Shown: positions 14,131-44,321, counted from the stretch's first letter. The stretch is DNA of 64,000 nt from Adineta vaga (GCA_021613535.1 CP075495.1:3968001-4032000); one strand, 5' to 3'. Program-made: numbers and translations. The notes: generated from the sequence alone by a model not told the origin.

Positions 14131-15042
14131 ATGAATTCAACAACAAATATTTCAACAGCTGATTCATATCTCAATTATTACATTGTTTGTTCTCTATCAG
14201 CTAGCTTTGGTCTTATATCAGTTATTCTATCTATATTCATTGTAATCATAGTCAAAATTAGTAAACCTCGTTTACATACAGTTCGGCATTTACTTATGTG
14301 TAATACATGTATCTCATCAGTAATTTATTGTACGATGCAAACAATAAATTATGCATTTCTTATATTTTTACCATGGATAACAAGTGATTTAGCGTGCAAA
14401 TGGCGTGGCTATCTTGCTTATGTCTCAGTCTCAGCTGCGACATATTCTTATCTTGTTCAAGCCATATCACGTCTTTTCTTTTCAATCTATGCAATAAAAT
14501 ATCCATGGTTAACAACATTTAATGCACATTATGTTCTTATACTTGTTCATTGGTTTACTGTATTTACTATACCACTATCTGCATTAATTACAAATGATAT
14601 CTATTTTCGCCCCGGTCTACTATGTTGGGTACCTGCTAGACGTACAATTCATATGATGTATACTGGTGTTGCCTTTTATATTCTGCCAGTTGCTACGATT
14701 CTGATTATTTATGTTGTCATTTATCGAAAACTTCGACAGAGTAAAAGAGCAGCAACAACATTGAATAATACAATGAGTGATAAACGTGATCTTGAAGTTC
14801 TTCGAAATATAGTTATTCTTCTTTGTATTTATATTGCTGGTGGAATTCCAACTATAATATTTATGGTAACGAACGATGATCTATTTTACTTTACTGGTAT
14901 TGTTACATTTACATTAACAGTAGTAATTGAAAAAATTTGTACAATTTTATTGGATCGAGAACTTCGACAAGTAGTAAAAGGTATGATAAGATCAAACGAT
15001 CGTGTAATGCCTTTCGAAAATACAATGACCCAAAGAATCTAA
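14131..15042 (+). CDS. Orphan rhodopsin-like 7TM receptor, copy 1 (intronless)
   Basis: 303 aa with seven hydrophobic segments, Cys at the TM3 start (CKWRGY) and in ECL2 (LCWVP). Paralogous to the next two ORFs. Confidence 0.8.
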   Translation: MNSTTNISTADSYLNYYIVCSLSASFGLISVILSIFIVIIVKISKPRLHTVRHLLMCNTCISSVIYCTMQTINYAFLIFLPWITSDLACKWRGYLAYVSVSAATYSYLVQAISRLFFSIYAIKYPWLTTFNAHYVLILVHWFTVFTIPLSALITNDIYFRPGLLCWVPARRTIHMMYTGVAFYILPVATILIIYVVIYRKLRQSKRAATTLNNTMSDKRDLEVLRNIVILLCIYIAGGIPTIIFMVTNDDLFYFTGIVTFTLTVVIEKICTILLDRELRQVVKGMIRSNDRVMPFENTMTQRI

Positions 15043-16289
15043 ATAGAACAATCTTTTCTCAATGAATTTATCTATTATTGAATTGAAAAATAAAATAAAG
15101 TATTTATTAATTCTAGAGAACATTTTTAGATCGAATGTTTTGCTTTGTTTATATAATCGATCATAATTGCAATTGTGTACTTAAAGTTTATACTAAAATT
15201 CTTTTTTCTACAATTGAATAGTTTCGACGAGGTATCGAGACATAACTAAGAATGTTTTCATCTGTTCAATTTCCGTTCTTGATGATTTTGACACACAAAG
15301 ACTAATTATCACTAACATTCAAGTTAATCTTCAAGCTTTAAAATAAGTCCTGTCAATTTATTTCGCACGCCATTAACTTTCTTGTCTTCTAATACTGTTT
15401 TTCTGCAGTTTGATTAAAAATGAAATGATAGGATCTTTTCATTTGTGGGAACATCCAATTTTGATGAAGGTATGCATTTCTATCCTATCTTCTTTTAAAC
15501 ATTTAAAATAAAAACAAAATCATATTATCCAAGTATAAAGTATATAGAAAGTCTGAATTCAAAATGAGATTAAATAAATTAATCATGAATTATAAAGCAG
15601 AAGATTGAAAAGAACGTCAAAAAAACGGTCAGTGTTTGAAACATAACAGGAATTCTTTTCAATTGCTTTATTAATAAGCAAAATCAATTGAAAAACAAGA
15701 AAAAGAAACATGTATTGGAATGTTTTCAACATCTGCAGTTTCCTTCCTCAATCAAATCGATAATTAACAGGTGTTTTGTCTAAGAAAATCATCAGACATA
15801 AATAACATATAACATCATACTCCGCTATTCTTTTCTTTTCTTTTCATTTCCTAAGAAGAGAAAAGCGTAGGTAAATGTTGAATTAGATCTAATTACATCT
15901 TTGAGAGTTCTTTTTTTTATTGATTATTCATGCATTCTTTTTCACTTCTTTCTATGAAGAGAATCTTTAAATTATACTAGTTATATTGAGGTATAAACAA
16001 ATTATTTACTTCGTTAGCATAATCCTATTCGTTCGAGTAATAATTATCAAGTCTGAGAAGAAAGAGATCATCATATTTTTTTAGTACGAAAAGCTTCTCG
16101 TTTCCGCTTCATAGAATATTCTTTACATTTCTTTCTTGTATGAATATAGTTCGAGAGAACTTATTCAACATTTTACTGAAAGATCAGCTCTTCTTTTATG
16201 AAAGTTATTAAGTCTCAGTTCATTGTCTCTTTTCTTCTATTCATTTAGACTTTTACTTCTTTTCAGTGCATCATATTTCCCTTCAGCAA

Positions 16290-17257
16290 ATGAGTACAAC
16301 AGAATCAACACCAAATTATATCAAAGATTACTATATCGTCTGCTCAATATCAGGTTTTTTTGCTTTAATAGCTGTATTTCTTTCTTGTATGATATTAGTT
16401 GTAACATGGCGAACAAAACCTCGTCTTCATACAGTTCGACATGTACTAATGTGTAATACATGTATTGCATCAATATGCTATTGTATTGTACAAATTATTA
16501 ATTATTATTATTTGATTTTTTTACCTGATCGTACGGATGATGTTGGTTGTCGTTGGCGTGGATATTTTTCCTATGTAACTATATCTGCTGTTACTTATTC
16601 ATTTTTTATTCAAGCTGTATCTCGTTTATTTATTGCTATTTTTTCAACAAAATATAAATGGTTAACAACATTTAAAGTACATTTCATTTTGATTGGTATT
16701 CAATGGCCTATTGCAATTATTTTTCCTTTACCAGCAATCATAACAGTAGATATTTATTTTCGTCCACGTGCTCTTTGTTGGGTACCATTAAGAAGTTTAC
16801 TTCATGTTATTTATACATTTGTTATGTATTACATTGCGCCGACATTATTGATATGTATTATTTATCTTTATATATTTTTTCGAGTGAAAAAATAGCTAAT
16901 CGTTCGGAAATGTTGATTGGAACAAGAAATAATGAAAAACGAAATCTTGAACTTCTTCGAAATATTTTAATTCTTTTGTTTATCTATTTAGCTGGAGGAA
17001 TACCAACATTTCTATTTATTGTCACATCTAATCGAATACTTTATTTAATTGGTATTGTAACAATATCATTAACTGTAGCAATTGAAAAACTTTGTACGAT
17101 CATTTTGGATCGAGAACTTCGACAAGTGATTAGAAGATTCTTTTGTCGTGATAGTCAAATTGTACCTATGCGCAATACATACGTTGTTGAACAAATAGAA
17201 AATTATCCACGTTTTCAACGAACTACTGCAAAAATAAAACAAACAACATTTCAGTAA
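16290..17257 (+). pseudogene. Orphan 7TM receptor, copy 2, with a 1-nt frameshift in an A-run at ~16887-16892 (pseudogene or sequencing error)
   Basis: Two overlapping ORFs (16266-16895, 16703-17257). Adding one A gives RVKKIANRSEMLIGTRNNEKRNLELL, collinear without gaps with copy 3 RVKRVTNRPCISVRPNNREKRDLELL. Confidence 0.75.
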
Positions 17258-18317
17258 TAAAACAATGAAAAATAAATTCTTTTTTGTTGTTGTATTGTAT
17301 GTATTGATCTTTGCTTTTTTGTTTTTATCCAATAAAAATTTGTTGTTTAATCAAACAAAAGTGACTCGTCTTTAGCTACTGAAAACCTTACAGCTCTGTG
17401 TAGATTTTCTCTAAATATTAATACACTTTCTCATTTGAACAGTCATCTTTATCAATATGACAAAATCGAACTCTATGATTTTTACCAATGGTTAACTACT
17501 GATGTTTCTTAGAAACTGAATGGTATTTGAAAAACAATTTATATCGTATATCTTTTAGTTTTCATTCAACAGACTTTATTACCTGTCATTAACCCTGAAT
17601 GCATTGAACTTTGCCAAATAACGGTCATACTTCACGATTGGTTCTATTTTATACTTAAAAATATTCTAATATTTTATTCCTATAATATGTGTCTTTGTAT
17701 CTGCTGTTTTGACGACTAAACGTTGATTGATGATACAGCAGCTTCACTCTATTTAGTACCGTCCTGTGAAAACAGGTATTGATTTGACATAAGGGAAATA
17801 AACACACACCTCTTTTAGCTTAATTTTTATCTTCATGCAAATAAATTTCTTGCGACTAAAATGTTCGCAAAAGAAAATTAGAAGAATTAATTTCTTAGAC
17901 ATCGGCAAACTTGAAAAATAAAGAGATACTTCCGAATTTACACATAGACTTCATTAATTAAAAGACTACATTCTTCAAAAAGTGGAGAACTTAGCCTGGG
18001 TTTTTCGTGCTAACAATCAACTTTATATCTTGATAAAAATGACAGAAGTTTTTGAAATGTAACACTAAATTTATCTTGGTACTTTTATTCATTTTCTAAA
18101 TTAATACTACTCTTTATACCTAAATAGGTAAGAAATTATATAAATCGGTTCATTAAATCTCTATACAAACATATATTTCTCGTGAATTCAACAATGATTT
18201 TCTTAAATCGACAGATTTTCTGCTACAATGAATCTTTTGATCTATATTTTATCTTTTCTATAATCTGAGAGACAATATATAAAAATACAATGCTAAAGAT
18301 GTTGCCATTATTTCAAG

Positions 18318-19310
18318 ATGAGTGTAAACCTAACATCACTGGAATCTTCTATTGTTATCACTGATTATTATACTGTTTGCTCACTGTCGGCTATCGCATC
18401 CATCATTGTTATCTTAATATCACTTTTCACATTAGTTTTGGTTTGGCGAACGAAACTTCGTCTTCATACCGTGAGACATTTACTAATGTGTAATACATCT
18501 ATTGCATCCATTTTATATTGCATTGTTCAATCAGTCAATTACACTTTTCTCATCTTTCTACGATCACAAACAAGTGATCAGACATGTCGATGGCGTGGCT
18601 ACTTTGCTTATCTTAGTATTTCAGCTATTTCTTATTCGTATTTAATTCAAGCCATCTCTCGTTTTTTCACATCTGTTCTTTCACATCGATATCGATGGTT
18701 GACAACATTCAAAACACACTATATCCTCATCCTTGTTCAATGGCTCATTGTCATCATCATTCCATTACCTGCAATACTAACAAAGGATATTTACTATCGT
18801 CCAACATCACTTTGTTGGGTACCATTGAAGCATTTGATCCATGTGATATACAGTTTCTTTGCTTACTACATATTTCCAACATTATCAATTTGTATGATCT
18901 ATGTTTTTATTTATTATCGAGTAAAACGAGTAACCAATCGTCCGTGTATATCTGTCCGACCTAACAATAGAGAAAAGCGTGATCTTGAATTACTTCGTAA
19001 TATCCTCATTCTTTTGTTTGTTTATTCAATAGGTGGAACACCGAGTATTTTATTTTTAATTACAGCTAATAAGCCGATCTATTTATTGAGTATTGTAAGT
19101 ATGTCATTAACGGTGGCAGTTGAAAAAATATTCACCACCATCCTGGATCGTGATATACGTCAGGTTATTATAAAATTATTATCTTCAACAACACGTGTTA
19201 AACCTTTCGAACGATTACGAAAGAAAGAAACTGGTTTTCGAGCTACAAATCATTTCGAATTACAACCCTGTCCTAACAAATATTTAGAAAATGTGCAAAG
19301 AACTAACTAA
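18318..19310 (+). CDS. Orphan rhodopsin-like 7TM receptor, copy 3 (intronless)
   Basis: 330 aa, sharing RLHTVRHLLMCNT, CRWRGY, QAISR, LCWVP and EK..T..LDR motifs with copies 1 and 2. Confidence 0.8.
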   Translation: MSVNLTSLESSIVITDYYTVCSLSAIASIIVILISLFTLVLVWRTKLRLHTVRHLLMCNTSIASILYCIVQSVNYTFLIFLRSQTSDQTCRWRGYFAYLSISAISYSYLIQAISRFFTSVLSHRYRWLTTFKTHYILILVQWLIVIIIPLPAILTKDIYYRPTSLCWVPLKHLIHVIYSFFAYYIFPTLSICMIYVFIYYRVKRVTNRPCISVRPNNREKRDLELLRNILILLFVYSIGGTPSILFLITANKPIYLLSIVSMSLTVAVEKIFTTILDRDIRQVIIKLLSSTTRVKPFERLRKKETGFRATNHFELQPCPNKYLENVQRTN

Positions 19311-22151: not shown

Positions 22152-25100
22152 TTAGAAATGAATACGAGCAAGAACGAAAAGACAAAAAATCAGAATATTA
22201 TATGTCATATGAATTGATGTACTACTAGATGTTGTAGTTGGTGGATTTGTTATTCGGGATGTCGTTGGACTACCTGTTGTTGGACTACTTGTTGTGACAG
22301 AGCCAGTTGTTGTTGTTGTTGGACTACCTGTTGTTGGACTACTTGTTGTGACAGAGCCAGTTGTTGTTGTTGTTGGACTACCTGTTGTTGGACTACTTGT
22401 TGTGACAGAGCCAGTTGATGAGGTGGTACTACCAGTTGCTGTAGTGGTGCTAACACCTGGTCGAGTACTTGTGCTAGTTGTTGCCGTGGAACTTCTGGTT
22501 GTAGAACTTGCGGAAACTGTTGAAGTTGTTGGCCGTGAAGTTGTCGTGCAACTTGGCAGTGTTGTTGTAGTATTTGGATAGAAGATAGCTACGTCATCTA
22601 TAGTAACAGTGAATTGTTCTCGGATCTAAATAAAGTGAGCAAATGTTTTTGAATGCGAACAAATAAAAACTTACTTCATTAAATACTGTTGGTCGTGAAC
22701 AATCATCAGCACGACAGAATAAATCGATTTCCCATAATTCTACGGGTCGTCCAATACAATCAAGATATAGAATACCTTCCATGTCAATTCGATGTGGATC
22801 AATACTAAAAATTTCAGAATCGGGTGGTCCACAGAATGATTGATAACATTGTTCATTAGTATCTGGGTCACTATATAGATCTGATACAAGACAAGTTGTA
22901 TTGCATGCTTCAATAGGACATCGACCAGGATCAAGAAAATCAAGTGTGCCACATTGAGCTGCATCAGGACATTCATGACAATCACGTACAGGTTGGCCAG
23001 TACCTAAAACATTGTTATTCAACCATTCATCGGGTAATCGCATTTGAAAACTTTCAGGCATATGTGATATGTATTTGGGTTCATTACAATAATCCCAATT
23101 ACATCCATAAATAACCATATTCGTTCTTGTACTCCATTGTAGTAGTGTCACTATATATAATGGATTCTTCTACTAATAAATAAGGAAACGTACGTATATA
23201 GACACGAGTTGAATTTCGATCAATATGTTCTAAAGTAATAGCACTAGCATCACCATAATTTTCTCGGATAATTGTGCAATAAGTTGTTTTAGCATCAGCT
23301 ACTGTGAATTTATCGCACGGCCAATTTGGTTCATCATAATAGTAACAATCATAACAGATACGTTGAGGTTCAATTGACACAAGACTATCATTGAAAATTT
23401 GAGGAAGATTATTTGTTTGTGTTGTTAGATTTCCGCGAAGTTCATCGAAAATTTCTGGTCGAGAACAATCATCAGCACGACAATAAACATCAATTTCCCA
23501 TAATTCTACTACGTTTTGATTGTCTGCATAGATAATACCTTCTAATTCTACACGATGTCGATCTTCTTCAAAATCAACATCTGGTGGATTGCAATATGAT
23601 TGATAACATAATAGATCATCATCTGGATTATTGAATGTATCCGAGACAACACAAGTTGTGTTACATGATTTGATTGGACATCGACTAGCATCAAGAAAAC
23701 TTTCTGTACCACATTGAGGTGCATCAGGACACTCATGACAATCACGTGCAGGTTGACCAGTACCTAAAACGTTTGTATTTAACCATTCATCACTTAAAGT
23801 CATTTTGAAGCGTCAGGAATGAATGGAACACGACTTGGATGATTACATAAACTTGTATTGCAACCATAAATAACAATATTACTTCGTATCCACCATTTTC
23901 CTGTTGTTTCATTTTGAAGTATTGATTCTTCTGCCAGTATAAAAGGAAATTTACGAATATAAACACGTGTCGAATTGCGATCAATATGTTCTAAATCAAT
24001 TGTAAAATGAGTTTCATAGTTGATACGTATAATCGTACAATAGGATGAATATGCTCCTGATACTTTAACTGTATCACAAGTACAATTTGGATTATCATAA
24101 CATGCACATTCGTAACATGCAAGTTGTGGTTCAGCAGGTGGAGTTGGTGTTGTAGTTACAGTTGGTGTAGTTGTTGTTTGTGTGGTTGTTATGTTAAAGA
24201 ATGGTGATAAATCAACTTGATCGACAGTAAGTTGTGCTTGAAGTTCTTTGAAGATTTCTGGTCGAGAACAATCATCAGCACGACAGTAGAGATCAACTTC
24301 CCAAAGTTCAAGTTGAGCATTTACACGATTACCATATATGATGCCTTCGATTTCTACACGATGAGTATCAATTTGATAGTCTTCAGTATCAGGTGGTGCA
24401 CAGAATGATTGATAACATTGTTCATCAACAGATGGATCATTAAATGTATCGAAAACAAGACAAGTTGTATTACATGATTTGATTGGACATCGACCAGGAT
24501 CAAGAAAATCCGTTGTACCACATTGAGGTGCCTCAGGACACTCATGACAATCACGTACAGGTAGACCAGTACCTAGAATATTGTTATTCAACCATTCATC
24601 GGGTAGACGCATTCGAAAATTTGCTGGAAGAGATGGTACAAGTCGCGGATCATTACAGAAATCTGTATTGCAACCATAAATAATTAAATTTGGTCGAGTT
24701 ATCCATAGACTAGTTCCTTCATTATATAAAATTGATTCTTCAACAATCATATACGGAAATTCTCTAATATAAACACGGGTGGAATTTTGATCAATATGTT
24801 CTAAAATAATCCAAGTATCTTGTCCATCATATTCACGAATAATTGTGCAATAAGTTGTATTATCTGGTAATGCTAAAGTTTTATTACATGCACAAACAGG
24901 ATCATCAACACAATAACAATCATAACAGTGAAGTTGACCTGGATTACCTACAACTGTATTATTGAAGAAGACAGAGAGATTACCTTGTTTTACTGTTAGT
25001 TGATTTTCAATTTCTTTAAATATTTCTGGACGTGTACAATTTTCAACTTGACAATATACATAGGTTTCCCACAATTCCACCTTGTCTGGATGACTAGGAT

Positions 25101-27380
25101 AAACAATGCCTATAACTTCTACACGATAGTAATCCACAGAAAATTCAGAACTATCCGGTACACAATATGATACATAACATTGTTCATTGTTTTCTGGATC
25201 ACTATAAATATTTGAAGCAAAACAAGTTGTATTACAAGTTTGTATCGGACAAGTACTACCATTAGTAATACCTTGTTCAGTACAGATTGCACCACTAGGA
25301 CATACAGACAAGTTAATTCAGATTGTCCGTTGCTCATCAAACTTGAATTTAACCACGTTTCAGGTAATGTCATCTCTAAAGCGGTTGGTAGGTACGTAAG
25401 GAGAGAAGGTTTATTACAATAATCCACATTACATGCATAAATAATCTCGTTTGTTCTTGTAAACCATTTACCCGTTTGATTATCAAACAAAATTGCTTCT
25501 TCGACAAGAACATATGGAAGTTCACGAACATTTGAATACGAATCAGTAATGTCAGCATGTTGAAAATAAACATAAACATTGCTACCATCATAAGTACGTG
25601 TGAGTGTACAATAAGTTGTGCCTGCATCTTCTATTGATATTGTTTCACATACACAGTCGACTCCACCTTCACAATAACAATCAAAACATCGAAGTTTTTT
25701 TCCACCACTCGATTGATTGAATAAATATGTTAAATCACCGGGTTGATAGAGAAGGTTTTCTCGTAGTTCTGTGAAGATTTCTGGTCGAGAACAATCATCA
25801 GCACGACAATAAACATCAATTTCCCATATTTCAAGATCTGATGCACGATTAGCATAGACGATACCTTCGATTTCTACACGATGAGTATCAATATGAACAA
25901 TTTCTGAATCTTCTGGTGCACAAAATGATTGATAACATAAGAGACCATTAGCCGGATCATTGAAAGAATCTGAAACAAGACATGTTGTATTACATGATTT
26001 GATTGGACATCGACCAGGATCAAGAAAATCCGTTGTACCACATTGAGGTGCATCAGGACATTCATGACAATCACGTACAGATTGACCAGTTCCAAGTATA
26101 CTTGAATTTAACCATGCTTCTGGTAAACGCATTTGAAAACTATTTGGTAAATAATATAGAAGATCTGGTGAATTACATAAACTTGTATTACATCCAAAAA
26201 CAACACGATCATTTTGAGTATCCCATCGACCTGTGTTTTCGTCATAAATAATTGATTCTTCAGCTAATACAAATGGATATTCACTTATATAAACATGAGT
26301 CGAATTTTCAACCACATGTCCAAAATCAATAGATGTAAATTGTCCGTAATTTTGACGTATAATTGAACAATAACTATCATCTGCCGAAATAACTTCATAA
26401 GTTGTACATGGACAAACTGTTCCAATGCATGAACAATTGTAACAAGTTAGTGGATTAGTTGGCGCTGTTGATGTTGTAGATGGTGGTGATGGTGTTGTAG
26501 ATGGACGAGTAACTGGAAAATCAATGATACCACTAACAACACCTGAAAGTAATTCATTAACTTCTTGAAAAATACTTGGACGTGTACAATTTTCAGCAGC
26601 ACAATTGATATTTAATTCCCAGATTTCAAAATTTGAACGATTCTGTGCTAAATAAACAATAGCTTCAACTTGAACTTTATATTTTTCATTTGCATCATTA
26701 AATTCATCGACCATTTCTGATGGTGTACATTGTGATTGATAACATAATTCATTAGTATCAACATCATGCCATAAATCATACAATGAACACTAAAAAGAAC
26801 AACTTATAGTATAACACATATTTCAAAAGAATATCGTTATATTTACTGTAGTCGCATTATCACAAGACTTAAATGGACATTGATCATAATCGATCGAATG
26901 TGTTGCATTACTACATATCGCAGTTGAACAATCATTACAGCTAGTTGTTGATCCAGTTCCATAAATATTGTCAGTTAACCAAGATGCATCAATAGTTAAT
27001 TGAAATGATTGTGGTAAAGATGCAATCATTTCATATTTATTACAAAAATCCCAATCACAACCATGTACAACATGTTTCGTTTGTTTATCCCATGTAGTAG
27101 TTGTTTCATTATAATATATAGCTTCATCTACTATAATATAATATGGATCTTTTATCCGTACATACGACGTATTCAGAGCAGCTGATGATAATTCAATATA
27201 TGGATTAGATGTATGTAAATCTTCGACAATGGTACAATGAGAACCATCTTCAACGTCGATGATAGTACCACAATCACAAGCAGTTGTATTTGCTGGTTGA
27301 CAATAACATTTGTAGCAAACAAGACCAGTACTAGGTGCTATCGAAAGTAGCAGGATGAACAAAATCCAATGATTTTTCAT
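22152..27380 (-). CDS. Large secreted, putatively GPI-anchored Cys-rich repeat protein A: six ~240-aa double Ly6/uPAR-like modules, Thr/Ser stalk, hydrophobic tail; three apparent frameshifts (~25307, ~23810, ~23140)
   Basis: Signal peptide MKNHWILFILLLSIAPSTG. Repeated L.CY.C.C...GC..D.CN and CHECP...CRADDCS modules. Introns at 26846-26790 and 22674-22626. The last exon is a mucin-like stalk ending ...NILIFCLFVLARIHF*. Confidence 0.8.
22265..22417. repeat. 51-bp tandem repeat, about 3 copies, encoding TTGSVTTSSPTTGSPTT in the mucin stalk of gene A
   Basis: Near-perfect repeats of gttggactacctgttgttggactacttgttgtgacagagccagttgttgtt are directly visible. Confidence 0.9.
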
Positions 27381-29112
27381 AACCGAAAGATGCTACAAAC
27401 TAGCTTTGAGTTGTATAATTTCGAATGAAAGCAGAAAGATATAATTCCGGAAGATTTTTATAGATGTTGTATTTTGTTACTACGCATTTTTATAATATAA
27501 AACTCATAAAAATCTTTCGTTAAGCTTGAGTCTTGTCCATAATAATCAGACCATATAACATTTTCTATTTAATAAAAGACATATTCACGAAAGTAACAAT
27601 GGTAAATAACTTCTATTATCAAATTATTTTATTGACAGAAGTTTCTATATCATATAATCGTCAACAGGCTATTTCATTTCATAAGGAGTCAATATCTTTT
27701 CGAAAAACAAGAGCTTTTACAGTTGTCATAAACTCGATTTCGATGTATTCATTTGAAATTTTTGTTGGTACTTTTCAAGAATCTATTGATCTGATAAGAA
27801 ATGAAAAACATGACTTCCAAAAGACTTTTTCAAGGACATAAAAAAATAGATTTTGCGTAACGTCATGATTATTTGAAAGTAATTTCGAAAGATATCAATA
27901 ATATTTGAGTATAAATGTTGATTTATGTACAATTAAAAACAATTTGTATGAAGCAGAGATAAACTCAATTTTGGTTTTAAATCAAATTAATTCAATGTAA
28001 AATATTGTATAGATATGATTCCAAAATAAATAAATCAAATAAACATCCTACACATTTTTCAAATAGCAGTCGACGTATCTACATATTTTATTTGATTTTT
28101 TCGTCTTAGAAGAACATCAAACAAAAAAATTTCTCAACAACATAATTAGTTTATTAAAAAATGTGCGTACGAAAACTCACATTTTTTGAATTTGTTATAT
28201 AATTAAAAGGAATCTTATCATACAGAAAGACCTTCTATTATGAGCAAGAAATTAATGTATTTCATTCTTAACAAGCTGTCTAAAATAAATAAATAAAGAT
28301 AAGAGAATTCAAAGAAAGATCGCGTATGTTTGATTATCTTTAGTTGACTTATGAAAAACCTGAAGCATACTCATTTCTTATATGAAATTTTATCGAATGG
28401 AAGAATCGGATGATTATAGATGGACTTCGAAGAAACGAATGAATTCTTAGGTCAGCTCCGGCATTCTAGTACTACTATTTTCCATAAACAACAATCGAAA
28501 ACTTCACTGTTTACTAAGCTATATATACTTAGTGTAGATTCGCCTTTTGAATGGTAAAACTCTCAAAAACTTTTCTTCCGCATACGAATAAACAAAATTA
28601 TACCTCAAATTGTGTCGATTATTATTTATGTATATATGCAAATTACATGCAAGCTTCAATGAATCAGTCAATGTTCAAATAAGAGTATCTTTTATGTCTT
28701 TTTGTCATTAAGGTAATACAATTCTATTAATTGAAAAGAGATTTGACCATATATCTGCTACTTTTCTACATCAAGATGGGTTGTGAATAGTATATTCTTG
28801 AATAAATGAACTAATTGATCGGTTTTCATAAAACATGAGAGTATTATGATATTTTGTTCGATCTACGTTGCATGAAAGAATACGATGAACTTTTTCATGA
28901 TTGTATAACACAGTATGCGATATTGAACGATTTCTTAAAAAAGAAATAATTTCATTATATAAATTTGATTGAAAAATTTATTAAAAATTAAAGATAAAAA
29001 ATAAGAATGAAGAAAATCATCAAAAAAAGAAATCATATCGACTGGAATTTCATAGTCATTCTATGTCGGTAATTGAAAAAAAGACAGAAGAAAGTTTCAC
29101 GAAAATGGTTAA

Positions 29113-31787
29113 TCAATGAAAACTGAATAGAAAAATCGATACTAGTAGTACCAAATAGATGTTAAAATATGTTAAAACTGATGCTTTCGATGTTGTTGTA
29201 GCTCCTGGTACGGTAGAAGTCATACTTGACGGGTTCGTTGATGGTTTTGTTGATGTCGATGTCGAGGCTGATGTTGATGTAGTCTGATCGAAAGGACTAA
29301 GATCACCAGGATCAACAGTAAGTATAGTTTTCAACTAAAATAGTTTATGATTATAGATAGTTTTCATAAAAATGTTCATCAAAGTAATTACTTCAGTAAA
29401 TATTTCTGGTCGAGAACAATCATCAGCACGACAGTAGAGATCAATTTCCCATATTTCTACTTCACGTGATGGCTTATGAAGATATACTATACCTTCGATT
29501 TCTACACGATGAGTATCAATTTGATAGTCTTCAGTATCAGGTGGTGCACAGAATGATTGATAACATTGTTCATCAACAGATGGATCATTAAATGTATCGA
29601 AAACAAGACATGTTGTATTACATGATTTGATTGGACATCGACCAGGATCAAGAAAATCCGTTGTACCACATTGAGGTCCCTCAGGACACTCGTGACAATC
29701 ACGTACAGGTTGACCAGTGCCTAAAACATTGGTATTCAACCATGAATCTGGTAAACGCATTTTGAAAGTATTAGGCAAATATGGAATAAGACTAGGATGA
29801 TTGCAATAATCCCAATCACATCCATAAACAACAAAATTAGTGATTGTATTCCATCGTTGCAATTGTTCATCATATATAATTGATTCTTCAACAAGTAGAT
29901 AAGGAAAATCACGAATATGTACGCGAGTAGAATCTTGATCAAGATGTCCTAATGTAATCCATGTAGATTGACCATAATTTTCACGCATAAGTAAACAATA
30001 TGTTTCATTTGAATTCATAATTGTTGTTCGATTACATGGACAATCAGGTTTATTATAACAATAGCAATCATAACATCGACGTTGTGGAATATTTGGATCA
30101 TGTGTTTCATTGAATAATGCCGAGAGTGTACCTGGCTGAACAGTTAATTGTTCATGAAGTTCTTTAAATATTCCTGGACGTGAACAATCATCTGCACGAC
30201 AATAGATGTCAACTTCCCATAAATGAACAACATCCTGACGACTAGCATAAATAATACCTTCAATTTCAATACGATGACGATCTAATTGATAATCTTCTGT
30301 ATCAGGTGGAAGACAAAATGATTGATAACATAAATAATCATATTCAGGATCATCGTATGTATCTAAAACTAGACAAGTTGTATTACATGATTGAATTGGA
30401 CATGTGTTTGCATCAAGAAAATCAGTTTCACCACATTGAGCTTCATCTGGACATTCATGACAGTTACGTACAGGTAGACCACTACCGAGTACACTTGAAT
30501 TTAACCATGCTTCTGGTAAACCATTTGGAAACTGTTTGGTAATAGTGGTATAAGACTAGCTTTATTACATAGATTCCAATTACATCCATAAACAACAAAA
30601 TTTGTTGTCGTAAACCATATACCTGTTTTTTCATTATAATCAATTGTTTCTTCAATAAGTGCATAAGGAAATTCTTGAATATACATAAATGTTGCATCTA
30701 ATTCAAGATAATCAGCATATATGTAAGTTTCTTGTCCAAAATTTTCTCGTACTATAATACAATAAGTATAATCAAGTGAACTAACGACCATTGATGAACA
30801 GTCACATGTTTGTTCATCAAAACAATCACAACTATAACATCGAAGTGGATTTTGAATTGGTGTTGTTGTAGTTGATGGTGCTTGTGTTGTTGATGGACGA
30901 GTAATTGGATAGTTAGATAAATCACCAATTTCAAGTGTCATTTGCTGTGCTATTTCTTGAAAAATCGTTGGTCGAGTACAATTCATTACAGAACAATAAA
31001 CATCTATTTCCCAAATATCATATTTTGAACGATCTTGTGCTAAATAAACAACTGATTCAACATCAACTCGAAATTTACCACCATAAAGTTCACCAAATTC
31101 TCCATCTAAATATTCCGGTGCGCATTGAGCTTGTATACATTGTTCACCTGTATCAACATTATTCCAAAGATCATAGGCTAAGCACTAAATATCAATAAAA
31201 GAAAGATAAATTCGAATTATCTTATTCACAATATAAATAAGTTTATATTACCGAAGTTATATTTCCACATGATGTCAATGGACATTGACTAAAATCACTA
31301 GGATTAGTGCATTACCGCATACTTCTGTATCACAATGGATGCAACTTGAGACAGAACCAGTACCGTATATGTTTGTATTTAGCCATGCCGTACTAATATT
31401 TAATTTGAATGAATTTGGTAGTGCGCTTATAAGATCAGGACTATTACAACGATCCCAATCACATCCAAAGACAACACTACTGGTCCATAAAAACCATTGT
31501 TGAGTTGTACGATTATATCTAATAGATTCTTGTGTTAAAACATAGTATGGATCTTCAATATACACCCAACTTGCATTACGTGGAACTCGATTTAATTGAA
31601 TATATGTTGTATCAGTATATCTTTGTTCCAAAATAACACAATAATCATTTTCTGTTGAACTTGTTATTACATCACAATTGCATGAAGTTATATCACTTTG
31701 ATCACATCCACATTCATAACAATCAAGACTACTACAAGGTATGATTGATACCAAGAGTAATAGAACTAAACTTCGAATGATAATCAT
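29113..31787 (-). CDS. Paralogous GPI-anchored Cys-rich repeat protein B: three double Ly6/uPAR-like modules, short S/T stalk; two apparent frameshifts (~31308, ~30521)
   Basis: Signal peptide MIIIRSLVLLLLVSIIPCSS then LDCYECGC. Same modules and same two intron positions as gene A (31251-31185, 29391-29335). C-terminus ...TTTSKASVLTYFNIYLVLLVSIFLFSFH* looks like a GPI signal. Confidence 0.8.
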
Positions 31788-33275: not shown

Positions 33276-34057
33276 CTATCGAGAAAGACAACGTTCTGGT
33301 ATACATTTCAATGCTTCGAACCAATTGTTATTCGTATGTTTTAAAGTCATTAATATATTATATACTTGATTTAATGATAATACAGGACTTGCATTCGATG
33401 AAAATCTAAACGACAACAATGTGAATATGTTTGAAGTAGAATAGATGAAATTTACTTGAGATATTTTTGTAATGGTAATGATTGATGACGAATTTGTTCG
33501 GCTTGAGCTTTTTCAAAAGTCAATCGTTCTGTTTTAGCTAGATGAATAAGAAAATTGATTTCAAGTTTAATTGGATAAAAGAGTAAAGTACTTTTTTGAA
33601 AGATTCCACCGAGTACATAGATCATATTATGTTCGTATTCATTCATAATATTAGGTGAATCGGGTGAAAGATAAACAAGTGATTCTCGAGGAAATAAATC
33701 CAAATAGGAAAGAGATGTTGTTTGACAATATGGACTATTTCGTAGAGATTTTGCTGATTCATCTGTACATACATTACATAGAATAACAAACGAAGGTGAA
33801 TGATATCGATAGAGTGAAGTAAAACATGAATGAATCTTTAATTGTAAACGTTGATAATAATTTTCATTGGGATTATATTCATTAGAAAATGAACAATCAA
33901 TAACAATATATTCCGTTAGACGAGCAGCGATAGCAAGTTTTGTTTGACGTAATTGTCGTTGCAGATTAGAGAAATGTTCTGGATTACGAAAAATATGAAA
34001 TTGACGAACAGATGATAAACATCGCGAATGAATACGATAATGTATTTGAAATATCAT
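33276..34057 (-). CDS. TRM10-family SPOUT tRNA m1R9 methyltransferase-like (TRMT10C/MRPP1-like), about 3 exons
   Basis: Motifs IVIDCSF, YLDLFPRESLVYLSPDSPN, IYVLGG, LPLQKYL, LSLNQVYNIL and NWFEALKCIPER. The Arg-rich N-terminus resembles a mitochondrial presequence. Confidence 0.78.
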
Positions 34058-35605: not shown

Positions 35606-38600
35606 ATGCACTCAATAATTGTATGGATTGTTTTTTTGATCGCATTATGTTTTGTTCTTATTCAAGGTAAAACATCGATTCCTGATCAATTACCATTAGT
35701 AACAATTCCATATGCTCAACGTAATATAACCATATATACATCATCAAGTAATCCTAGTCGAGAACCCAAAGATTGGCTATTTTGGTATGATCCATTAGTT
35801 GTATTTGATCCAGCAAAAGATATTCATCACTATAATGAACAAGTTCGATTTCAATTTGCCATTGCATCATCTGAATTTGAGCAAACTGCTCGGAAAACAA
35901 TTATTACAAAAATGCATCCTGATGTTGAACGATCTGCTGTATTTTGGATTATTGAACCATTACCAATTGATACTCTAACTATCTATCTTGTTGATCAAGC
36001 ATTTTTACCTATACCTGCTGTTTATCCTTGTACGAAATATCATCTTTCTGGTATATCAACATTCGAATGTCAATTTGTATGTACATCAATGATCATTGCA
36101 AGTTCATTAACACAAAATCTTCTTTGTGGTAAAATTAAATTTCAATTGGAATATTATATTCAATCACAAATCAATCAAATATCTGTTCCACCACGAACGG
36201 CAACATTATTTAATTTACGTAGTTTACGAACACAATTTCGTATCGGTAAATATATTCATCCAAGACAAGAAAGTCAACTTGTAGCAAAATATTTCATTCA
36301 AACACAGACCATTGATGATACAATTAAAGAAAGTGAATTACAAGGTCTTTTTCAATTAGCTACAAATACTACAACACGTTATGATATTACTTATCCAAAT
36401 GATATTTGGTCATTAAATGATCTCGAAACGATTATTAATCAAGAATTATTCTATATAAGTATTCAAAAGAATAATAAAAGATCTTTTCATTTGAAAAGTA
36501 CGGAATCATCATGGGCATTTAAATCACCAGATAAGCAAACATTTAATATGGATGAAATTCAAGCAATGTTTTTAGAACAACATCAACTTAATGTTGAATG
36601 GTCATCGACAGAAAGTCTATGGAAAATAAAATCATTAACAGTTCGATTATTATCTGATATTTTAGATACATTACAATTAAGTGTTATTAGTAAACAATAT
36701 GATATTGATAAGATTAATGCAACTAATCATCGAAGTATTGATTGTTCAGATTGGTCAAGTACATGTTCATGTCAAGCAGCATCATCATGTATGGTCTTCG
36801 TTTCCAGTACGCAGTTCATTCGAATACCCTTTATAGATATGGATTTTTCAAAAACAGGTTTTACTATTGAATTATGGATACGACCACATGCATTACCGGA
36901 TGGTGATATTCCAGTGCAGTTGATTAATTTTCGTGGTGAATATCAAATAACATATAAACCAAAAGGTGAAATAACATTTTCAATAACAAATAAACGACAT
37001 CCAAATTTTTATACAACAACACTACAAGCTATACCATTGGATCAATGGACACATATTACATGTGTTTTTGTATCCATCGAAAATCAGTTACGATTATATG
37101 TTAATGGAGAATTTGTTTCAAGTATTATTTTATCAATTAAATCACAAAAATTAAATGATGATATTATTATTGGACAACAATTCATTGGAGCAATCAGAGA
37201 TGTACGTCTTTGGGGATGTTCAAACCCACCAGAAAAAATTCTTTTATCTATGCGAACAAGTACTTTACTTGGAAATGAAACATGTCTTGTTGGTTTATGG
37301 CCCATGGGAGATGCTCTCGGTCAAACTATACTTGATTTATCAGTTAATGATATTTCGCATCCTGGAACGTTAGGTACTGATGATAATATCAATTTACTTA
37401 ATGATCCTATATGGGCATATGTTTTGCCGAAACCGCCACCACCACCACCACCTCGTATATTGACGTACCAGATCTTTCGAGAAAATATTACATTTGCCTA
37501 TGGTTGTACAATGGGGAACCATCTTTGATATACCAGTATGTGAGATAAAAGAATTTTGAAATCGTTTGAATAACATTTGTTTCTTATGTTTGTTTAGGTA
37601 CCTGCTGATTATGATGGTGATGGTTATGCAGATTTTGCTGTTTATCGAAAAACAACAATGACCTGGCTAGTTTCATCAAGTAATGATCCAACTGTTCTTA
37701 TAACAAAATTCTGGGGAATTCCAGGTGACATACCCGTTCGATGTAATTTTGATGGTGATCGGTATTTTGATTTTACGGTATTTCGTCCATCAACTGCTCA
37801 GTGGATATCTCATCTGAGTAGTAATCCAGGTTTTCAATATATTCATAAATGGTAAGCAAGACTGAATTTTATTAAGTCAAAAAATATTTTTCTTTTCTAT
37901 TGAAGGGGTAAACCGGATGATAGACCTTGTCCTGGTGATTTTGATGGTGACGGTAAAACAGATTTTGTTGTTTATCGTAGAGGTGCTTATTATATCAATC
38001 CATCATCGGATCCAACTGTTCAATGGACTAAACAGTGGTATGATATTAAATTTCCACACACATATATATATATATATATGTATGTACTTCTTTCCAACAA
38101 TACAATCTAGGGGTCAACCGGATGATATTTGTGTAAGCAATTGTGATTTTGATGGTGATGGTGTAACAGATTTTACGGTATGGACACCGAATACTGCTAT
38201 TTGGTCTTGGATACCTAGTAGAAGACCTTGGCTAATCTATCAAAAACAATGGGGCAGTCGATATGATATACCCTTGTGTGGAGATTTCGATGGTGATGGA
38301 AAACGAGATTTTGCAGTCTATCGAGAATGGACTGGTGAATGGTTTGTAATATCATATCGTGTTTCATCATTTATTATAACATTTCGATGGGGTCGTCCAA
38401 CTGATATTCCAGTTATGGGAGATTATGATGGTGATGGATTTGGTAAATAGAAAAATACTATTAGATATTTTCATTTTTATCATTATTTTAAACAATTTAT
38501 TTAGCTGATTTTGCTCATTGGAGACCAAGAGCTAATAAAACATGGGTATGGGAAGTTATACCAAGTTTAATGCCGGTTACGAAATTACGTAAAGCTTGGG

Positions 38601-41815: not shown

Positions 41816-41927
41816 TTCATCGGACGTATTTCTATTTCAGTTACATTTTTCTTTTCTCATCGTTATAGTCGTACACATTTGAATATTTCTTTCGAATACT
41901 TTTTTTATTCACTTACTACAACCAACA

Positions 41928-44321
41928 ATGTCAGACAAAATGGAACACGGCTCAGAAGATACTGAAACATTCGCTTTCCAAGCTGAAATTGCCCAATTGA
42001 TGTCGTTAATCATCAATACATTTTACTCGAACAAAGAAATTTTCTTACGTGAATTGATTTCAAATGCATCGGATGCTTTGGACAAAATCCGTTATGAATC
42101 ACTTACTGATTCAACCAAACTTGATAGTGGAAAGGATTTATTCATTAAAATCATACCAAACAAAGCCGATAATACTTTAACAATGATTGATACTGGTATT
42201 GGTATGACAAAAGTAAGTTTGTTCTCATCATTGATAAAAATATACTTAGCGTTTTTCTTTTGCATCTAGGCTGATTTAGTCAACAATTTAGGTACAATTG
42301 CTCGATCAGGTACCCGTGCATTTATGGAAGCACTTCAAGCTGGTGCTGATATATCTATGATTGGTCAATTTGGTGTTGGTTTCTATTCATGTTACTTGGT
42401 TGCTGACAAAGTTATTGTTACATCAAAGCATAATGATGATGAACAATATGTTTGGGAATCTAGTGCTGGTGGTTCATTTACTATTCGACGAGATCCAACT
42501 GGTGAACCACTTGGTCGTGGTACAAAGATTGTTATGTATCTTAAAGAAGATCAAACTGAATATCTTGAAGAAAAACGTATTAAAGAAGTCATCAAGAAAC
42601 ATTCTCAATTTATTGGTTATCCAATTAAATTACTTGTCGAAAAAGAACGTGACAAAGAAATCTCCGATGATGAAGCTGAAGATGAAAAAAAACCAGCCAA
42701 AGATGAAGATGAAAGCAAAAAAGATGAAGCTAAAGTCGAAGAGGTTGAAGATGATGAAGATGATGACAAGAAAAAAGATGTCGATAAGAAGAAAAAAAAG
42801 AAAATCAAAGAAAAATACACCGATGAAGAAGAACTCAATAAACAAAAACCAATCTGGACACGAAATCCAGAAGATATTTCGACAGAAGAATATGCCGAAT
42901 TTTACAAACAATTAACAAACGATTGGGAAGATCATTTAGCTGTTAAACATTTCAGTGTTGAAGGTCAATTGGAATTTCGTGCACTTTTATTCATTCCAAA
43001 ACGTGCACCATTTGATCTATTTGAAAATCGTAAAACCAAAAATTCAATTAAATTATATGTACGTCGTGTATTTATTATGGAAAATTGCGAAGAATTAATG
43101 CCTGAATATTTGAATTTCATCAAAGGTGTTGTTGATTCAGAAGATTTACCATTGAATATTTCTCGTGAAATGTTACAACAAAACAAAATTCTTAAAGTTA
43201 TTCGAAAAAATCTCGTCAAAAAATGTGTTGAATTAATGGACGAAATTGCTGAAGATAAAGAGTCATTTAAGAAATTTTATGAACAATTTTCTCGTAATTT
43301 GAAACTTGGTATTCATGAAGATTCAAACAATCGAGCCAAATTAGCTTCCTATTTACGTTATAATTCGTCAACATCTGGTGATGAAGTAACATCATTCAAA
43401 GAATATATTTCACGTATGAAAGAAAATCAAAAAGATATTTATTATATCACGGGTGAATCACGACAAGTTGTTGATCAGTCAGCCTTTGTTGAACGTGTAC
43501 GTAAACGTGGCTATGAAATTATTTATATGACTGAACCAATCGATGAATATTGTGTACAACAATTGAAAGAATTCGATGGTAAAAAACTTGTTTCGGTAAC
43601 AAAGGAAGGTTTAGAATTACCCGAAGATGAAAATGAAAAGAAAAAGTATGTTCAATGATAAAGAAAAGAGTTTAAAATTTTAAATCTTACTTTTTTTTCT
43701 TCTCTCGTTTAGACAAGAAGAAGATAAAGAAAAATATGAAACATTATGTAAAGTGATGAAAGATATCTTGGACAAGAAAGTCGAAAAAGTTCTCGTCAGT
43801 AATCGACTTGTTTCATCACCATGTTGTATTGGTAAGTTTAACTCTTTCAATAAGAAAAAAACATAAACTTATCGGATTTTCTTTATTATTATTTAGTTAC
43901 ATCACAATATGGTTGGTCAGCTACTATGGAACGTATCATGAAAGCTCAAGCTTTACGTGATACATCAACAATGGGTTATATGGCTGCTAAGAAACACCTT
44001 GAAATCAATCCTGATCATTCAATTATCAAGACACTTAAATCTAAAGTTGATCAAGACAAAAATGATAAATCAGTTAAAGATTTAGTTACATTATTGTATG
44101 AAACATCACTTTTAGCCAGTGGTTTCGCTCTTGAATTACCACAACAACATGCTGATCGTATATTCCGTATGATCAAACTTGGTTTAGGTATTGATGAAGA
44201 AGATGGTGTAGATGAAAATCAAGGTGCAGCTGGCGAATCAGATATGCCACCACTTGAGAATGCTGGAGATAATTCAGCTAATGTTTCAGCTGAAGCATCT
44301 CGTATGGAAGAAGTTGATTAA
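41928..44321 (+). CDS. hsp82: Cytosolic Hsp90 (hsp82), 4 exons (introns 42213-42269, 43647-43712, 43832-43896)
   Basis: [44 protein letters not shown], charged linker, [15 protein letters not shown] and terminal MEEVD. Confidence 0.98.

Follow-up and report, generated by a model that had tools for sequence, protein, structure and literature searches.

A tandem pair of sodefrin-repeat genes in the hsp82 region of the bdelloid Adineta vaga and their likely multi-three-finger surface proteins

Receptors anchored by glycosylphosphatidylinositol (GPI) and containing several Ly6/uPAR (LU) domains bind extracellular proteins and signal through partners, and the sodefrin precursor-like factors (SPF) of amphibians are two-domain three-finger proteins. 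In the LU consensus, ten cysteines are bonded 1-5, 2-3, 4-6, 7-8, and 9-10, and the usual gene layout is two exons per LU domain, flanked by phase-1 introns (PMC6600238). We analyzed here a window of Adineta vaga DNA (the whole stretch under study, 64,000 nucleotides, G+C around 30%, taken from an assembly of 100.8 Mb in 6 contigs) in which two genes, that we call A and B, lie head to tail on the minus strand. A first reading made without database searches, hereafter the sequence-only reading, had described them as a pair of giant GPI-anchored surface proteins with 12 and 6 three-finger domains, members of an undescribed and expandable family. Based on the gene structure, module count, fold of the first half of the module (half A), conservation, synteny, and identity with deposited genes that we observed, they are, taken as a whole, likely to be the tandem sodefrin-repeat genes of the bdelloid hsp82 region, encoding multi-three-finger surface proteins. 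The two genes are the following:

22152..27380, minus strand: gene A, six modules, about 1,706 aa when intact, with a signal peptide, a Thr/Ser stalk, and a hydrophobic tail
29113..31787, minus strand: gene B, three modules, 850 aa when intact, with the same build as gene A

Gene A was 97.6% identical to the UniProt entry B3VZZ2_ADIVA, "Sodefrin repeats A," of 1706 aa ("sodefrin precursor" in GenBank), and gene B was 98% identical to B3G3Z7_ADIVA, "Sodefrin repeats C," of 850 aa. The Philodina roseola counterparts are ArkA_3 (1574 aa) and ArkC_4 (860 aa). B3VZZ2 and B3G3Z7 have the same start, tail, and module count as A and B and the same neighbors, TRM10 and hsp82, but both are uninterrupted whereas the window copies carry five small deletions. 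By identity, module number (6 and 3), and synteny, A and B belong to the "sodefrin repeats" family of hsp82-region genes. The near-identical proteins, along with the named homologues, identify the source of the DNA as A. vaga. The hsp82 gene itself was found at 41883-44318 on the plus strand (Pfam HSP90, E 7e-166); its introns are short and its frame is unbroken. The window therefore corresponds to the classic bdelloid hsp82 region, cloned and annotated in the degenerate-tetraploidy studies of 2008-9. A gene for a TRM10-type tRNA m1G methyltransferase (33452-34057, minus strand) lies directly upstream of gene B.

The genes can thus no longer be called undescribed, the same two having entered UniProt/GenBank in 2008-9 under the names "Sodefrin repeats A/C; sodefrin precursor." This name derives from a weak similarity; since it points to the two-domain three-finger SPFs, a three-finger relation was already implied by the old annotation. 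In literature searches combining bdelloid with Ly6 and sodefrin with rotifer, we found no paper on how the rotifer proteins fold, how they are anchored, or what they do; they are mentioned only once, in a passing remark on a stalk sequence resembling STTRPTGTT (PMC12154537).

Three-frame translation and motif mapping placed the start ATG of gene A at 27380 and its stop TAA at 22152-22154, and the start ATG of gene B at 31787 with its stop TGA at 29113-29115. The exons and introns are distributed as follows:

26847-27380, minus strand: exon 1 of gene A
26790..26846, minus strand: intron 1 of gene A, 57 nt, GTAAAT..TTTTAG, inside half B of module 1
22675-26789, minus strand: exon 2 of gene A
22626..22674, minus strand: intron 2 of gene A, 49 nt, GTAAGT..ATTTAG, directly after module 6
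22152-22625, minus strand: exon 3 of gene A
31252-31787, minus strand: exon 1 of gene B
31185..31251, minus strand: intron 1 of gene B, 67 nt, positioned as intron 1 of gene A
29392-31184, minus strand: exon 2 of gene B
29335..29391, minus strand: intron 2 of gene B, 57 nt, positioned as intron 2 of gene A
29113-29334, minus strand: exon 3 of gene B

All four introns are 49-67 nt long, have canonical GT..AG ends, and occupy two equivalent positions in A and B. Intron 1 interrupts half B of module 1 at ..NATT/CSLYDLW in gene A and at ..NITS/CLAYDLW in gene B (the slash marks the junction), and intron 2 stands in both genes directly 3' of the last C..DCSRP..F.E. Both junctions of gene B agreed residue for residue with the B3G3Z7 protein (..GNITS/CLAYDLW for intron 1 and ..EIFTE/LKTILTV for intron 2). 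Modules 2-6 of gene A are encoded by one exon, and so are modules 2-3 of gene B; in Adineta steineri, the large exons are single open reading frames (ORFs) of 591 and 1376 codons. We thus recovered the gene build proposed in the sequence-only reading, with a signal peptide, module repeats, a Thr/Ser stalk, and a hydrophobic tail in both genes at the coordinates given above. The junction comparison confirmed the two common intron positions, the placement of the internal modules within one large exon was seen again in the uninterrupted 1376-codon ORF of A. steineri, and motif mapping retrieved the cysteine motifs that had been named for both half-modules.

For module counts, the tree, and comparison with the deposited proteins, the spliced pieces were joined locally with an X at each frame break, and database searches and folding were run on individual exons, pieces of ORFs, or one module at a time. 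With a profile derived from single modules, we detected six full modules in A and three in B, each over positions 1-230. Half A measures about 95 aa with 8 cysteines and runs from x-L-x-C-Y-x-C-x-C through G-C-x-W/T-D-x-C-N; C89, C94, and N95 were invariant in 13 sequences, which gives the C-x4-C-N ending. It is followed by a conserved linker of about 30 aa (..LP.SF.M.LP..WLN..VLGTG..) and by half B, about 100 aa with 10 cysteines (8 of them invariant), from C-H-E-C-P through Y-C-R-A-D-D-C-S. Half B has no adjacent Cys8-Cys9, and its last cysteine is followed by Ser in every module of the A/B pair and by Asn in three diverged modules of paralogues. The modules of gene A and the module of gene B that was used for structure prediction are located as follows:

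about 26562-27326, minus strand: module 1 of gene A, spanning intron 1
about 25767-26453, minus strand: module 2 of gene A
about 25012-25697, minus strand: module 3 of gene A
24244..24936, minus strand: module 4 of gene A, complete and unbroken
about 23441-24126, minus strand: module 5 of gene A
about 22675-23365, minus strand: module 6 of gene A
29392..30084, minus strand: module 3 of gene B, 231 aa, used for the AlphaFold model
about 29800-30084, minus strand: half A of module 3 of gene B
about 29707-29799, minus strand: linker of module 3 of gene B
about 29407-29706, minus strand: half B of module 3 of gene B

N-glycosylation sequons numbered 35 in A and 12 in B. Module 6 of gene A has both the third and the fourth cysteine of its half A substituted (around 23320-23356; C-YD-C-Y-Y-YDEPN-W-P-C), and their joint loss suggests that these two cysteines pair with each other. 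The deposited A. vaga protein and that of A. ricciae likewise have another residue (Y or L) in place of the third one, which is intact in A. steineri, Philodina, and Rotaria.

Module 3 of gene B was modeled with AlphaFold (m9e5a1efbfd75; predicted local distance difference test, pLDDT, 87; predicted template modeling score, pTM, 0.82), and the model was submitted to fold searches. Half A of the model shows the three-finger beta fold, three hairpin loops extending from a disulfide core, and is as modeled a three-finger domain of the Ly6/uPAR (snake-toxin/Ly6) type. Its 8 near-invariant cysteines are compatible with loss of the 7-8 bond, as occurs in the N-terminal LU domains of mammalian multi-LU proteins. 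Half B had pLDDT values of 77-91 in this whole-module model, with the same strand order as half A according to DSSP. The two-LU protein C4.4A aligned 153 residues over model residues 2-231, and uPAR D2-D3 aligned 139-152 residues over residues 1-229, these alignments across both halves carrying a root-mean-square deviation of 9-12 Å. All-beta in the model, with ten cysteines and CxxC...Cx4C[S/N] brackets, half B is probably a strongly diverged three-finger domain.

Several observations weigh against the assignment of the module to three-finger domains. Half A has 8 cysteines and not 10, the adjacent Cys8-Cys9 pair is missing from half B, whose final residue in the A/B pair is Ser and not Asn, and the exon layout, with two introns per gene, breaks the rule of two exons per LU domain. 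Comparison of half A with half B by hhalign (profile against profile) revealed no relation, and the module profile matched no PDB sequence at E<=10. Scanning exon and ORF pieces and 21 module sequences against Pfam at E<=1, with UPAR_LY6, Toxin_TOLIP, Activin_recp, and ecTbetaR2 as the families considered, produced no usable LU, toxin, or activin-receptor family; the sole signal was a sub-threshold CD59 match (17.5 bits for a cut-off of 33.9) over the signal peptide and the start of module 1 of gene B. Finally, an exhaustive HMMER search of 1.84 billion cluster representatives with the module profile returned 62 matches at E<=0.001, among which there was no Ly6, uPAR, or amphibian SPF/PLI-gamma protein. 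Half A is thus a member of the three-finger superfamily at the level of the fold, but not at that of the sequence family as defined by Pfam.

Some of these results could also mean that half B is a separate, lineage-specific disulfide-rich beta domain, in which case the proteins would carry 6 and 3 LU domains instead of 12 and 6. The empty hhalign comparison is in line with this, as are the lack of an adjacent Cys-Cys pair and, in most modules, of the terminal Asn of the LU consensus (PMC6600238). When half B was modeled alone, the Foldseek PDB, VIA wide, and ESM-Atlas shape searches gave no informative match, but this isolated model had low confidence (pLDDT 73, pTM 0.43), whereas in the whole module the same residues reach pLDDT 77-91, follow the strand order of half A, and are covered by the two-LU alignments. 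The ten cysteines, the CxxC start, the Cx4C[S/N] end with its Asn in three diverged paralogue modules, and the TbRII ectodomain, which was the nearest named language-model neighbor of half B alone (0.83, a lead only), also argue against a separate fold, which we regard as rather unlikely. The 12 and 6 three-finger domains of the sequence-only reading, for which AlphaFold and fold searches had been proposed as a check, could therefore be retained for half A, which displayed the three-finger fold, but not for half B taken in isolation, which matched nothing; "6 and 3 LU plus 6 and 3 probable LU-like domains" is a safer count.

The N-termini of the pair resemble signal peptides: MKNHWILFILLLSIAPSTG followed by LVCYKC and MIIIRSLVLLLLVSIIPCSS followed by LDCYEC. 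At the other end, the last exons encode the stalks and tails:

22155..22625, minus strand: last exon of gene A (coding), Thr/Ser/Pro stalk of about 130 aa and tail ..SSSTSIHMTYNILIFCLFVLARIHF
29116..29334, minus strand: last exon of gene B (coding), short Thr/Ser stalk and tail ..TTTSKASVLTYFNIYLVLLVSIFLFSFH

The stalk of gene A is 79% S/T/P and contains a 54-nt tandem repeat (22260-22417, 2.9 copies, 99% matches). Both A and B finish with a hydrophobic stretch followed by 1-2 residues, and a manual check of 13 proteins (A, B, and 11 relatives) found in every one of them 12-24 hydrophobic residues with 0-3 residues beyond, preceded by small residues (SNA, SKA, GS). As far as their sequences can tell, A and B are probably GPI-anchored on the outer cell face, atop a mucin-like Thr/Ser stalk. 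They could instead be tail-anchored type I membrane proteins without a cytoplasmic part, or released soluble or extracellular-matrix proteins, given that the hydrophobic run of gene A is short and followed by RIHF and that the amphibian SPFs, from which the family name originates, are secreted. Both options appear improbable in view of the small residues, polar spacer, and terminal hydrophobic run kept in 13 out of 13 proteins, including the 1-, 2-, 3-, and 6-module forms, a layout which is that of a classical GPI signal and is common in LU proteins (PMC6600238). The overall build of the sequence-only reading is thus supported, and its GPI-type tail pattern was conserved in every full-length relative that we inspected.

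Every named match of the HMMER search was a bdelloid protein (Adineta, Rotaria, Philodina, Didymodactylos), and the unnamed weak matches showed the same signal peptide, CYEC start, stalk, and tail. The haploid genome of 100.8 Mb contains about 7 family loci: besides the A/B pair, C4 and C6 each carry a gene with 1 module, C5 and C6 each carry one with 2 modules, and C2 has a weak partial match. Gene A orthologues had exactly six modules in A. vaga, A. ricciae, A. steineri, P. roseola, and R. socialis, and six were also present in Rotaria sp. Silwood2, whose gene model is cut at the N-terminus. Gene B orthologues had exactly three modules in 7 other species (Philodina roseola, Adineta steineri, and five Rotaria). 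In the maximum-likelihood tree, the modules clustered by position across species with support mostly at least 95: for example, A-m1, m3, m4, m5, and m6 each grouped with the Rotaria module of the same number, and B-m1, m2, and m3 did so with their respective counterparts. The order TRM10 (L019:2272-3056 in A. steineri), gene B, gene A was the same in A. steineri as in the window.

Judged from these sequences, the module number is fixed at 6 and 3. The positional grouping of the modules together with the constant counts indicates that the intra-exon duplications predate the split between Adinetidae and Philodinidae and that the numbers have been held since. A rapid turnover of module number in A and B was thus rejected on the grounds of positional orthology and constant counts in Adineta, Rotaria, and Philodina, and the "expandable" copy number of the sequence-only reading did not survive a comparison over two bdelloid families. 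Traces of exchange between modules were detected within the pair:

29520..29724 (module B3) versus about 24372-24576 (module A4), minus strand: conversion-like patch, about 200 bp, 95-100% identical

The longest identical run in this patch is 119 nt and its flanks are 60-77% identical, which indicates gene conversion between genes A and B. In P0089, a metagenome protein of 1302 aa from ENA, the adjacent modules 3 and 4 were near-identical (tree branches of 0.01 and 0.05); this could be due to a recent intra-exon duplication or conversion in an unidentified bdelloid, or to an assembly artefact. The B3/A4 patch and the P0089 modules are two signs of ongoing exchange. Together with the existence of members having 1, 2, 3, and 6 modules, they are what could still be invoked for a rapidly expandable surface-coat or recognition family, serving in pathogen defence or self/non-self recognition. 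We consider this very unlikely: 6 and 3 modules are fixed, with positional orthology, across Adineta, Rotaria, and Philodina, and the family is small, with about 7 loci per haploid genome and 62 clusters out of 1.84 billion proteins. A family of this size, and with so constant an architecture, does not resemble a repertoire that diversifies for recognition.

The paralogue on C5 (L007:604-3657, G000 C5:4244679-4247732, plus strand) has two modules, the second of which lacks most cysteines of its half A. About 290 nt downstream, an ORF on the same strand encodes a GPS motif and transmembrane helices, and in the A. steineri (P0172) and A. ricciae (P0092) gene models two modules, a GPS, and a seven-transmembrane (7TM) region are joined. 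The module thus appears to serve as the ectodomain of an adhesion G-protein-coupled receptor (GPCR) in this paralogue, which fits a ligand-binding or adhesion role. A broader proposal, which we put forward tentatively and hold to be unlikely as it stands, is that the unit of about 230 aa is a bdelloid-private domain pair, found both in GPI-anchored arrays, where 1, 2, 3, or 6 units are combined, and in an adhesion GPCR, where it would be the ectodomain that binds the ligand, the two uses forming a lineage-specific cell-surface recognition or adhesion system. If so, half B could represent a novel disulfide-rich fold or else an LU domain more diverged than any seen so far.

The reading frames of the window copies are broken at five sites, listed here with the nucleotides missing relative to the deposited proteins:

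25303..25310, minus strand: gene A, frame break 1, 1 nt missing versus B3VZZ2 (..SELTCHVCPSG..), start of half B of module 3
23807..23826, minus strand: gene A, frame break 2, 1 nt missing, linker of module 5
23137..23146, minus strand: gene A, frame break 3, 2 nt missing, half A of module 6
31306..31310, minus strand: gene B, frame break 1, 1 nt missing, half B of module 1 (exon 1)
30520..30521, minus strand: gene B, frame break 2, 1 nt missing, linker of module 2 (B3G3Z7: ..SFQMRLPEAW..)

The frameshifts that the sequence-only reading implied are thus real in this assembly, and all five (3 in A, 2 in B) are 1-2-nt deletions relative to the deposited A. vaga proteins. An explanation by tiny introns was rejected, the deposited proteins running through all sites where 1-2 nt are missing. 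Apart from these breaks, there was no in-frame stop in about 2,550 codons of A and B, and the cysteines of the deposited A. vaga proteins were all retained. Because all breaks are deletions, without any other damage, we favor long-read assembly errors over real or haplotype-specific lesions as their probable origin. On the other side, hsp82 in the same window has no frame break, so that the assembly is not error-ridden everywhere.

The copies in the window could alternatively be true pseudogenes, recently inactivated on this haplotype while the other haplotype, that of the 2008-9 Sanger clones, remained intact. Five breaks in about 7.7 kb of coding sequence close to an unbroken hsp82 would fit this scenario, as would the NCBI annotation of the assembly, which has gene B only as a 282-aa fragment (P0038), and the difference of around 2% between the window and the deposited proteins, from which the window may be another haplotype. 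However, inactivation would need five strikes over both genes without further damage, every one of them being a 1-2-nt deletion, that is, the typical long-read error, with zero nonsense codons in a long AT-rich coding sequence and every cysteine kept. A 7tm_1 gene of the window (16293-17179) is also frame-broken, which fits local polishing trouble. We thus view pseudogenization as somewhat doubtful and retain assembly errors as the preferred explanation. Whether base errors, as is likely, or haplotype lesions, these five sites fragment the public annotation of both genes in a chromosome-level assembly.

The broken 7tm_1 gene is the middle one of three tandem rhodopsin-type GPCR genes (14131-19310, plus strand), and its frame change at about 16823-16892 leaves no room for an intron, corresponding to a pseudogene or a small assembly indel. 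Elsewhere in the window (35606-38450, plus strand), Laminin_G_3 (E 2e-18) and FG-GAP repeats were detected in ORFs that may belong to a single gene for an extracellular protein.

Taken together, these data suggest that the products of A and B are secreted proteins, rich in disulfide bonds and N-glycosylated, that a GPI anchor probably retains on the outer cell face, atop a mucin-like Thr/Ser stalk. The ectodomain would be a string of 6 (A) or 3 (B) bdelloid-specific modules of about 230 aa, each composed of a predicted three-finger half A, the linker of about 30 aa, and a half B that is most likely a diverged three-finger domain. By analogy with uPAR, C4.4A, CD177, TEX101, and the ectodomains of TGF-beta-type receptors, the array could act as an extracellular protein-binding or adhesion surface with no signaling part of its own; we infer this binding function, just as we do the anchoring by GPI, the fold assigned to half B, and the cause of the frameshifts. 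Forms with 6 and with 3 modules would have arisen by duplication within one exon before the Adinetidae/Philodinidae split, the numbers being kept since then with occasional gene conversion between modules. These results give a structural identity (three-finger/LU) to a conserved bdelloid-only family that has been labeled "sodefrin" since 2008-9. They suggest that long LU-type arrays on a GPI-type stalk exist beyond arthropods and vertebrates, and that such arrays can stay at 6 and 3 units for very long in asexual animals. The adhesion GPCR ectodomain provides a testable handle on function.

The closest known systems in terms of build are the multi-LU GPI proteins, with three LU domains in uPAR, two in C4.4A and TEX101, four in CD177, and 2 to 44 in predicted Drosophila proteins (PMC6600238), so that few domains are not the rule and twelve would be no record. 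A and B differ from these proteins in having no detectable sequence relation with them, a half A with 8 cysteines and unusually long second and third fingers (95 aa), a repeat unit that is a two-half module with a conserved linker, and internal modules that share a single exon, where an LU domain usually takes two. The SPFs and PLI-gamma, the source of the database name, share with A and B a unit of two consecutive cysteine-rich halves of the three-finger type (for half B a probable one), but no homology was found, the module-profile HMMER search having retrieved no SPF. Moreover, SPFs are soluble single units of about 20 kDa that act as courtship pheromones, whereas A and B come from an asexual animal, link 3-6 units in a row on a stalk, and carry a signal for membrane anchoring. 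The ectodomains of TGF-beta, activin, and BMP receptors also adopt the three-finger toxin fold, as single domains on kinase receptors; A and B have neither sequence similarity to them nor a kinase. The pair thus does not represent a new kind of system: multi-LU GPI proteins were known, and the two genes had already been deposited.

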